Origin: Basidiobolus meristosporus CBS 931.73
Lineage: Eukaryota > Fungi > Basidiobolomycota
Assembly (NCBI GenBank): GCA_002104905.1
Contig: MCFE01000181.1
Coordinates: forward strand, 1-64,000
Direction: 5' to 3'
Length of the DNA: 64,000 nucleotides
In this document: positions 49,081 through 51,190 of the stretch, in pieces
How positions within the stretch are numbered: position 1 is the stretch's first letter
How the letters are laid out: the number at the start of each line of letters is the position of its first letter
The notes under the pieces: generated by a model
What the model was told of the DNA's origin: nothing
Database searches by the model: none
Seen by the model: only the letters and a program-made list of their open reading frames with translations
Program-made: the position numbers and the translations under genes

Positions 49081-51190
49081 CTATTCGTAGAGCTGTCTAC
49101 ACTCCTCATCCGTATAGCCAAGCAAGTGCAGGACGTATTTTAAGCTCTTCTGATTGATTCGAGTACTTGCCTATGTAGAGATAGAATATGTAAGTGTTCA
49201 GCTTTGTTAGTTCTGGTCAATCTGAAAGCTTAGAAGTACCCTTTCTTGAACTTTCGGCTTGGCATTGAAGGCAATGCCAAGACCCGCAGCTGCCAGCATC
49301 CATAAATCATTGGCACCGTCACCAACAGCAATCACCTATGCTTTAATAAGTACAAGGCAGGTGGGCTGTCAACATGCTATGGAGACAAACCTGATCAAGA
49401 GTGACTGACTCGGCCTGTGCAATGACTTCTAACAACTCTGCTTTACGTTGTCCATCTACGATGGGCCCAACCGTCTCACCGGTTAGAGTTAAGCCATCGG
49501 AAGAAACCTTCAGCTGATTGGCAAAAGCATAATCAAGCCCAAGTTCATTCTTGACGTAACTAGCCAAAGGCATGAAACCACCTGATTGTGGGCTAATGTT
49601 TTAGTGATCTATTATTCAGCATGTCGTGCTGCTGTATATTACCTGAAATGACAGCAAGCTTGAGGCCGATCTTCTTCAGCGCCTTGCAGAGAACGCGTGC
49701 ACCTTCAGTAAAGGTTAGACTCTCCTTGACTGTGTCAAGGACCGAAACGGAGGTGCCCTTAAGAAGGCCAACACGACGGCGTAAAGATTCCTTGAAATCG
49801 ATTTCACCGTTCATAGCCGCCTCAGTAATTGCCTGTAGAGTGTGTTACATAAACGCTTACTTATCCGACAGAGGAAACTTCAACCTACCGCCACTTGATC
49901 TACTACTCCAGCATGCTTAGCGATCTCGTCAATAACCTCCTGCTGAATCAAGGTAGAGTCCATATCAAACACCACAAGTCTCTTGTTACGACGGAACACG
50001 TCATACGGCTGCATAGCCACGTCTGTCCCGTGACTTAAACTGAGCTGGAAAAGTTGCACGCGTAGTGAATCGTAATCTACTGTCTTTGGTACACTAAGCT
50101 TGTAATCAGCACAGGAGACATGCCCCTCGTTTAACCTTGCCATTTTTTCGACCGAGATTTTATGTTTAAGTAAGAGGTGGGTCCATTCATATAAGAATTT
50201 TGCTGAGAGGCCGTTCTGATTCAAGATGGTAGCTGCATACTTGACTCTGTCTTGATAAGGTGCCTCCTCAATAGATTTCGGTAAAGGTCCATGGTTTTCT
50301 TGGATCTCGAAAGACAAAGTTCCGTCCCATCTACGTGCAGCCTCGGCCAGGTCTTGGAATATTGCCACGTTATCATTGGTGAGTGTAATCAAGACACCGA
50401 AAGTGGCAGTGTGGTACAGTCGGGAAAACATGAAATCTTCAATGTCGCAGTTGTGTTTTGAGGCACATTGGAGAATACACCCGATAATGTCGGTGCCATG
50501 AGGACCAGTGAGGGAGACGAGAACTTTTTGATGAGGCAGCAGAGCGGCTGTAGGGAACCAGTTCTTTTTCTCGGCAGGGGAGATTTTTTTTGAAAGAATC
50601 AGCTCGGGTGAGGTGCACGAGGGGGGCAGAGGGCTTTCTCCTAGTTCCCTCAGCAGCACTCGCTTTAGAGTGAGGAGATTTTCCGAACGCACAAAGGACA
50701 TGTTCGAAATACGCAACAAATAAGAGTCGCTGATTTTCAGCCCGGAGTGTCTATCGTGCTTCTTCAAAATCTTGGTGATAGCAGTATAGTTCAGCAACAC
50801 AAAACTCTCGAGCTTAATGATGCACTGCAGGATCTCTTTGCTTGTCAGAGTGTCTTCCTCACTTTGGCGGTGATACGATACGATTCTCTCCGTCTCCTCT
50901 ACATAGAACTCGTTGAGCAAGTGGACTTCTTTGTCTAGCATAGCTAGAAAATCTCCAACCAGGATTTGCAATTTTCCTAGACGGGAGGTAATGATATTTG
51001 CGTAAGAGTTCTCCTGAGCGGAATCCACGGTCCATTGAAGTTGTTCAGGTGTAAGTTTTGACAAGGCAAGGGAGTCAGGTGCAATATTTTGTTTTATGAA
51101 GGACTTCAACGCGACATAGTCGATGGTATAAGGTACCCAAGCCTCGGGGTAATTGACTTTGCGAGCTGTGATGAAATTACCGAACTTCAT
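49081..51190 (-). CDS. SPX domain - ACT domain(s) - phosphoserine phosphatase (SerB, HAD) fusion
   Basis: Exon 1 (51190-49889) holds SPX (MKFG...[11 protein letters not shown] ... [18 protein letters not shown]), an ACT-like region ([15 protein letters not shown]) and HAD motif I ([20 protein letters not shown]) in one frame. Later exons give [29 protein letters not shown]|[16 protein letters not shown] and [12 protein letters not shown]. Stop at 49081-49083. Confidence 0.92.

Follow-up and report, generated by a model that had tools for sequence, protein, structure and literature searches.

The subject of this report is a gene in a 64,000-nucleotide (nt) window, by which we mean the whole stretch of DNA analysed, from the zoopagomycete-grade fungus Basidiobolus meristosporus CBS 931.73 (contig MCFE01000181.1, positions 1 to 64,000). 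The gene lies on the minus strand, with its ATG at 51190 and its stop codon ending at 49081, and its five exons comprise 622 codons plus the stop. Its architecture is an SPX domain, followed by two ACT domains (ACT1 and ACT2) and then a SerB-type HAD phosphatase, all in one gene. The spliced translation agrees letter for letter with a database protein of the same strain (P0001, 622 aa) that is named 'phosphoserine phosphatase serb', and the SPX-SerB gene of B. meristosporus is therefore already annotated in databases. The predicted product combines a domain known for phosphate sensing with a phosphoserine phosphatase (PSP).

Gene model and domain architecture

The coding region is organised as follows, with all features on the minus strand.

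49081..51190, minus strand: entire coding region of the SPX-ACT1-ACT2-PSP gene, from the gene model; its translation is the database protein
49889..51190, minus strand: exon 1, carrying SPX, linker, ACT1, ACT2 and HAD motif I; 434 codons (1302 nt), stop-free, GT donor at 49888
49832-49643, 49581-49391, 49335-49240 and 49170-49081, minus strand: exons 2-5, from the gene model
49833..49888, minus strand: intron 1, 56 nt, GT..AG; skipped exactly by a contig of transcript run X1
49582..49642, minus strand: intron 2, 61 nt, GT..AG; splicing it out restores ISGGF; outside the coverage of run X1
49336..49390, minus strand: intron 3, 55 nt, GT..AG; a 55-nt skip in run X1, aligned 3 nt off
49171..49239, minus strand: intron 4, 69 nt, GT..AG; a contig of run X1 lacks it

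An initial annotation of this DNA had placed the SPX domain, the ACT region and HAD motif I in the same 434-codon exon, and exon 1 bears this out. Because a single open frame runs from SPX through both ACT domains to HAD motif I, an artefact of the gene model is very unlikely. Transcript evidence was available from one small public run (X1; share 0.05), whose kind was guessed as RNA and which stems from a relative about 95% identical. Mismatches between this run and the gene keep to a spacing of three bases, which is what synonymous change would produce, and the 3-nt offset at intron 3 is due to a synonymous GTG/GTT difference in the relative. One contig spans 50851-51222 and so covers the first two-thirds of the SPX coding part, approximately residues 1-113, together with 32 nt upstream of the ATG. 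As to the single transcript foreseen in the initial annotation, the contigs support three of the four modelled introns (1, 3 and 4) and the start is covered, the reads being too partial to establish one full-length mRNA.

The encoded protein divides into five parts, listed here with the motifs discussed below.

50636..51190, minus strand: SPX domain, residues 1-185, from Pfam, a family profile compared with Protein Data Bank (PDB) SPX chains, the AlphaFold2 model and Foldseek
51104..51118, minus strand: codons Y25..K29 in SPX helix alpha2, equivalents of ScVtc4 Y22 and K26 in the phosphate binding cluster (PBC)
50750..50773, minus strand: codons K140-R147 (KILKKHDR) in SPX helix alpha4; register from the phmmer alignment with Vtc4
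50537..50635, minus strand: linker, residues 186-218, variable and predicted to be disordered; ends in a conserved FPxxxLLP just before ACT1
50291..50536, minus strand: ACT1, residues 219-300; Pfam ACT_6 at 223-294; aligns with ACT1 of 3p96
49997..50290, minus strand: ACT2, residues 301-398; counterpart of ACT2 in 3p96 by alignment; starting point of the short fungal SerB forms
49081..49996, minus strand: PSP (HAD-IB) domain, residues 399-622, at the end of exon 1 and in exons 2-5
49952..49966, minus strand: HAD motif I, DMDST (nucleophile D409, with D411 and T413), invariant in the family

Residues 1-185 form a true SPX domain, as the initial annotation had proposed. Exon 1 scores 39.4 bits against Pfam SPX (PF03105), above the gathering score of 27.8, and the same family is matched in 30 of 30 orthologues (best 3.2e-15). 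The HMMER alignment with the Pfam profile on exon 1 is limited to the C-terminal helix, and a family profile aligns far more of the domain. Even a single-sequence search with the SPX part matches OsSPX2, 5ijp, OsSPX1, Vtc4, Vtc3 and XPR1, and a profile built from 30 SPX parts reaches OsSPX1/2 at 1.4e-18 and 5ijp at 2.4e-16. This profile aligns over positions 1-180 with OsSPX2 and over positions 1-171 with 5ijp (according to the structure titles in the fold search, 5ijp is the Chaetomium thermophilum Vtc4 SPX with InsP6 and 5ijj the Gde1 SPX).

The predicted fold agrees with this assignment. Modelled by AlphaFold2, residues 1-186 reach a predicted local distance difference test (pLDDT) value of 91 and a predicted template modelling score (pTM) of 0.86, with helices at residues 3-11, 16-21, 25-39, 63-112, 117-149, 154-161 and 170-185. 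When this model was compared with the PDB by Foldseek, the top 50 matches were all SPX domains; the best was the XPR1 SPX with IP8 (template modelling scores 0.70/0.76), and OsSPX1, CtGde1 and Vtc4 were among the other top matches. The N-terminal helical hairpin and the bundle on two long core helices that belong to the SPX fold are both present. At the level of individual residues, the MKFG..Y..LK pattern is in place (MKFG at residues 1-4, Y25, L28 and K29), and the KILKKHDR lysine cluster occupies residues 140-147.

Between the SPX domain and the remainder of the protein lies the least conserved part of the family, with a mean pairwise identity of 24% in which P213 and P219 are nonetheless invariant. 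In the full-length AlphaFold2 model, residues 185-214 have pLDDT values below 50, which is a prediction of disorder. The 'ACT-type regulatory repeats' seen earlier in the sequence can now be given as two ACT domains, on the basis of a Pfam ACT_6 match in exon 1 (score 28.1 against a threshold of 23) and of alignment to 3p96. In the full-length model, residues 222-296 and residues 315-395 each form a beta-alpha-beta-beta-alpha-beta unit. An end-to-end alignment with Mycobacterium avium SerB (3p96) takes in residues 219-617, with both ACT domains and the phosphatase (E value 3e-64), and a further one with 5is2 identifies the long form of SerB2 type, in which two ACT domains directly precede the PSP domain. 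Within ACT1, the GPHGTDI loop is invariant in the fusion family.

The catalytic domain exceeds the cut-off of the TIGR00338 serB equivalog by a wide margin (273.3 bits versus 144.15), with residues 390-610 covering profile positions 1-219 of 219, and it is also matched by Pfam Hydrolase, HAD and Hydrolase_3. HAD motif I (DMDST, 409-413) lies in exon 1, and the later motifs (SGG at 497-499, K544 and GDGAND at 566-571) are intact in exons 2-4, just as first read from the DNA. The protein has D409, D411, T413, E418, R454, S497, K544, D567, N570 and D571, and none of these varies in the family. We take E418 and R454 to be the phosphoserine-binding residues on the basis of the M. jannaschii PSP structures, with which this domain aligns. 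The domain search anticipated in the initial annotation returned SPX, ACT and HAD matches in every one of the 30 family members tested.

The genes around SPX-SerB can be described briefly. An open reading frame (ORF) on the plus strand at 42279-43370 encodes Lipid_DES and FA_desaturase domains of the sphingolipid delta-4 desaturase type; serine is a precursor of sphingoid bases, and there is no evidence that this closeness has any meaning. Upstream on the minus strand (52266-53201 and 55129-56577) are an M28 peptidase that extends over two ORFs, probably split by an intron, and an anoctamin/TMEM16-family protein (Pfam 357 bits).

Conservation of the predicted ligand surface

In ScVtc4, the PBC consists of Y22, K26 and K133, and a lysine surface cluster (KSC) consists of K129, K132 and K136 (PMC9911596). 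Mutations in either cluster lower InsP6-stimulated polyphosphate (polyP) synthesis (PMC9911596). In the HMMER register, K144 of the B. meristosporus protein corresponds to K133 of the PBC, and K140, K143 and R147 correspond to K129, K132 and K136 of the KSC.

We compared these positions in an alignment of 30 orthologues drawn from Mucoromycotina, Mortierellomycotina, Glomeromycotina, Zoopagomycotina, Entomophthoromycotina, Spizellomycetales/Rhizophlyctidales and Neocallimastigomycota. Y25, K29, K33, K140, K143 and K144 are invariant in all 30, although identity over the whole domain is no more than 43%. At position 147, 26 sequences have Arg and the other four Lys, so the charge is kept. Beyond the alignment, the full set of ligand-surface residues is retained in Coemansia, Catenaria and Sorochytrium, and Smittium has conservative K-to-R replacements at positions 29 and 144 together with K33E. 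A decayed surface is confined to Saitoella (K29T, K33Q) and to one metagenomic protein in which most of the basic residues are gone. The latter (P0264, 589 aa) carries a recognisable, charge-stripped SPX remnant in front of its ACT-PSP region.

The basic surface predicted to bind inositol pyrophosphates (PP-InsPs) is thus conserved over about five fungal phyla. An invariant ligand surface with only rare decay is the pattern to be expected if ligand binding is the function under selection. The initial annotation had read the protein as a dual-input enzyme that couples serine synthesis, or the salvage of inorganic phosphate (Pi) from phosphoserine, to cellular phosphate status, an inferred role that is strengthened by the strict conservation of the putative PP-InsP-binding residues.

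Distribution and history among fungi

A word-index protein search returned 934 matches, and domain content was taken from the best 120 of these. Nearly all of those 120 are either SPX+ACT+HAD proteins of 600-725 residues or metagenomic calls restricted to exon 1. More than 100 independently assembled species have the same domain order with similar lengths. Hundreds of database entries carry the fusion, most of them named just 'phosphoserine phosphatase'; the caution in the initial annotation that the architecture might already be annotated in early-diverging fungi was well placed, and our architecture search over fungal proteins finds it to be widespread in those lineages. A second search, against cluster representatives at 50% identity (best 150 representatives, names looked up for ten), adds Kickxellomycotina (Coemansia, Smittium), Blastocladiomycota (Catenaria, Sorochytrium) and Saitoella, and no non-fungal SPX-SerB was named among the ten. 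The fusion accordingly occurs in Blastocladiomycota, Chytridiomycota, Neocallimastigomycota, Zoopagomycota, Mucoromycota and Saitoella.

Saitoella (P0252, 613 aa), a member of Taphrinomycotina, is an early-diverging ascomycete with the SPX-ACT-PSP order. Its N-terminal domain falls under the Pfam SPX threshold and is homologous to that of the family by hhalign (probability 99.85%). The SerB of Sanchytrium tribonematis (P0267, 652 aa) was rejected as a member, as its N-terminal extension of approximately 175 residues is not SPX (hhalign probability 0.07%). Several database records have peculiarities of their own. Prokaryote-style gene calling has produced exon-1-only proteins of 430-550 aa with SPX and ACT from metagenomes (P0024, P0026, P0053), and the JGI label 'glycine cleavage system regulatory protein' that has been propagated on such exon-1-only proteins is misleading. 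Two proteins of 1115-1119 aa from a EukProt transcriptome (GHVS01; P0274/P0391) combine ACT_6 and ACT_PSP_2 with a C-terminal PSP domain, and their approximately 500 N-terminal residues match no family.

A search with the PSP domain shows that most Dikarya, many chytrids (Chytridiales, Rhizophydiales, Synchytrium and Cladochytrium), aphelids and red algae have instead a SerB of approximately 310 residues. These short forms (for example P0127, P0129, P0136, P0156 and P0179) consist of an ACT2-like domain and PSP, and start at the equivalent of about residue 317. We considered whether they might be truncated gene models and rejected this for Batrachochytrium, where the locus (L001:5782-6945) holds only ACT2 and PSP: the match sets in only from residue 318, and approximately 580 nt upstream of it lies the end of an unrelated gene. 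The annotated Batrachochytrium SerB (246 aa) is itself short by about 70 codons at its 5′ end. Among the 120 best short relatives, none comes from Mucoromycota or Zoopagomycota, apart from truncated models of the fused gene; the fused protein is therefore probably the only SerB of these two groups.

In a tree of PSP domains, the SPX-bearing proteins group together on very short branches and the short forms lie on long ones (SH-aLRT 86-90). The SPX or short state is explained with two changes, at very unequal rates: end branches are approximately 0.03 in the SPX forms versus 0.3-0.6 in the short forms. Likewise, the mean pairwise identity of catalytic domains is 83% among SPX-fused proteins, even across phyla, versus 62% among short forms. 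This difference suggests that SPX-fused PSP domains evolve slowly under an additional constraint, which may come from interdomain or oligomer contacts.

Within Neocallimastigomycota, a short form from Anaeromyces (P0140, 263 aa) shares only 68% identity with the long Piromyces finnis protein (P0098, 624 aa), although both fungi belong to one family. Neocallimastigomycota may therefore have two paralogues, a long SPX-SerB and a short SerB. Judged from these comparisons, the fusion is older than the divergence of the major fungal phyla, whether its history was one of a long ancestral gene that repeatedly lost SPX-ACT1 or one of ancient duplication and paralogy. We prefer neither history, because tree support is modest, rates are unequal and Neocallimastigomycota appear to have both forms.

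Proposed function and comparison with known systems

PP-InsPs, 1,5-IP8 among them, report to SPX proteins that Pi is abundant, and their levels drop when cells are starved of phosphate (PMC10511240). In the case of VTC, they activate the enzyme by breaking a homotypic SPX contact (PMC10167327). Enzymes of the SerB2 type are regulated by L-serine and by an equilibrium of dimers and other oligomers that depends on an ACT1 swap (PMC10564941). Taken together with the architecture described above, these properties suggest how the fungal protein might work. It would be a long-form PSP in which a flexible linker connects an N-terminal SPX receptor domain with a SerB2-type core of ACT1, ACT2 and HAD phosphatase, and would catalyse the last, Pi-releasing step of serine synthesis. 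The SPX domain would bind InsP6 and PP-InsPs, above all 1,5-InsP8 as the reporter of cytosolic phosphate. Ligand binding would alter either the self-association of the SPX domain or its docking on the ACT/PSP core. The altered contacts would then shift the equilibrium between active dimers and inactive oligomers, and hence phosphatase activity, with L-serine as a second input that feeds back through the ACT domains. On balance, we judge it slightly more probable than not that PP-InsP binding to SPX tunes the activity or assembly of the phosphatase in this way and links serine synthesis to phosphate status.

With regard to polarity, we have a slight preference for a scheme in which the PP-InsP-bound SPX domain would restrain the enzyme when phosphate is replete, and loss of PP-InsP upon starvation would release it. 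Under the rule of intracellular phosphate reception and signalling (INPHORS), SPX proteins free of PP-InsP turn on reactions that supply cytosolic Pi. It is because of this rule, and of the starvation-induced hydrolysis of phosphoserine in rice (PMC11287135), that we lean towards the PP-InsP-free form as the active one.

Several observations weigh against PP-InsP control of the fungal enzyme, or against this version of it. Many fungi thrive with a short SerB that has neither SPX nor ACT1, and since such forms are common, the SPX-ACT1 module must be dispensable for catalysis. The full-length AlphaFold2 model has a pTM of 0.51, and the position of SPX relative to the core is not confidently placed. 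The interval 50392-50850 and intron 2 lack coverage in run X1, and no single read or contig bridges that interval. The opposite polarity is favoured by the consideration that inhibition of a sole SerB during phosphate-replete growth seems costly. Finally, both the regulation of the fungal SPX-SerB and its direction are purely inferred.

The foremost alternative is that SPX acts as a module for structure, oligomerisation, localisation or partner docking (for example to another SPX protein or to a membrane), and that PP-InsP does not control catalysis. SPX domains do form homotypic and partner contacts (PMC10167327; SPX-PHR complexes 7d3y and 7e40), the full-length model predicts no SPX-core interface, and SPX-free short forms are catalytically sufficient in many fungi. 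However, the residues that are invariant in an otherwise divergent domain are precisely the ligand-binding Tyr and Lys, and a purely structural role would not keep a solvent-exposed basic patch for so long. Moreover, the docking of SPX domains on their partners is itself normally PP-InsP dependent. We therefore regard this alternative as unlikely.

Less probable still, in our estimate, is that the main job of the protein is not serine synthesis but the salvage of Pi from other phosphomonoesters or phosphoproteins, switched on by SPX in starvation. Moonlighting effector functions have been reported for M. tuberculosis SerB2 (PMC4270767, PMC10564941), rice induces a phosphoserine-hydrolysing HAD phosphatase under Pi starvation and thereby recycles Pi (PMC11287135), and Neocallimastigomycota seem to possess a second, short SerB paralogue. 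Yet the SerB equivalog cut-off is passed with full-length coverage, and E418 and R454, the residues presumed to bind phosphoserine, are invariant. Furthermore, no other SerB was seen for Mucoromycota and Zoopagomycota among the relatives searched, so that in these groups the fused protein most likely must supply serine. Lastly, the reading of the fusion as an artefact, in which neighbouring genes were merged by annotation or by misassembly, has in its favour only the interval that no read bridges and otherwise a general risk, and is effectively refuted by the 1302-nt stop-free frame that joins SPX, ACT1, ACT2 and HAD motif I, by recurrence in over 100 independently assembled species with the same order and similar lengths, and by the matches to all three domains in 30 of 30 members, in agreement with the initial annotation.

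Control of the phosphatase by PP-InsPs could also have an evolutionary dimension. As a more tentative proposal, to which we give rather less than even weight, SPX-ACT1-ACT2-PSP might represent the ancestral fungal PSP, gated directly by PP-InsPs, with this control later lost in Dikarya and many chytrids. Phosphate status (through SPX) and serine (through ACT) would then be integrated through one oligomeric switch. Such gating would be the first case of INPHORS exerting post-translational control over an enzyme of amino-acid and one-carbon biosynthesis.

A full-text literature search, to which most subscription journals were out of reach, found no description of an SPX-phosphoserine phosphatase fusion. 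Surveys of phosphate signalling in fungi, including arbuscular mycorrhizal fungi, list only transporters, VTC and Pho81-type SPX proteins, and the fusion is unmentioned in them. The SPX-SerB fusion is real and conserved and is present in databases with automatic domain matches, and it seems never to have been studied. Both of its modules are well known and fusions of SPX to enzymes exist (Vtc4, Gde1); the new part is the combination of SPX with SerB.

The usual view of SPX domains is that their task is confined to regulating how phosphate is transported and stored and how its starvation is signalled. A conserved SPX domain whose predicted ligand surface is intact, placed at the committed, Pi-releasing step of serine synthesis, suggests that central carbon, nitrogen and one-carbon metabolism may respond directly to phosphate status. 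The fungi concerned form a large part of the kingdom and include arbuscular mycorrhizal fungi, Mucorales pathogens, Mortierella and gut anaerobes, so the fusion may be relevant to the phosphate economy of mycorrhiza and may offer a fungus-specific regulatory handle in Mucorales. A soluble protein with a simple colorimetric assay would also be a tractable system in which to follow how a PP-InsP signal passes from an SPX domain to a catalytic domain.

Among known systems, mycobacterial SerB2 and M. avium SerB (3p96, 5is2, 8a1z) share the ACT1-ACT2-PSP core. They are without SPX, whereas the fungal protein adds a 185-residue SPX domain and a disordered linker before ACT1, and unlike mycobacterial SerB2 it has its own invariant motif, GPHGTDI, in the ACT1 ligand loop. 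Short fungal SerB proteins (the S. cerevisiae Ser2 type, and those of Lipomyces, Orbilia, Chytriomyces, Batrachochytrium and aphelids) have a homologous PSP domain that is 57-75% identical. These proteins lack SPX and ACT1, and their catalytic domains evolve much faster, as reflected in the identities given above (62% versus 83%).

The nearest precedent for an SPX-enzyme fusion that is tied to phosphorus salvage is Gde1. This protein of yeasts and filamentous fungi is an SPX-ankyrin-glycerophosphodiesterase, a soluble hydrolase of an organic phosphate ester. Its catalytic fold is unrelated (GDPD rather than HAD), it has no ACT domain, and its substrate and pathway are different. Phosphate status is also tied to phosphoserine hydrolysis by rice ACP2, a HAD phosphatase induced by Pi starvation that hydrolyses phosphoserine, with accumulation of serine and recycling of Pi (PMC11287135). 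There the link is transcriptional (PHR2, P1BS) and the enzyme is of a different HAD subfamily, whereas in the fungal protein the sensor is fused to the enzyme itself.

The SPX domains of Vtc4/Vtc3, XPR1, PHO1, rice SPX1/2 and C. thermophilum Gde1/Vtc4 have in common with the fungal domain the fold, the MKFG start and the PBC and KSC residues, with the difference that most SPX-SerB members have Arg at the third KSC position, where Vtc4 has Lys (K136). The outputs known for SPX domains are a transporter, a polyP polymerase, a cyclin-dependent kinase inhibitor, an E3 ligase and a transcription-factor trap. Unlike any of these, the predicted output of the fungal SPX-SerB is a soluble phosphatase of amino-acid biosynthesis.

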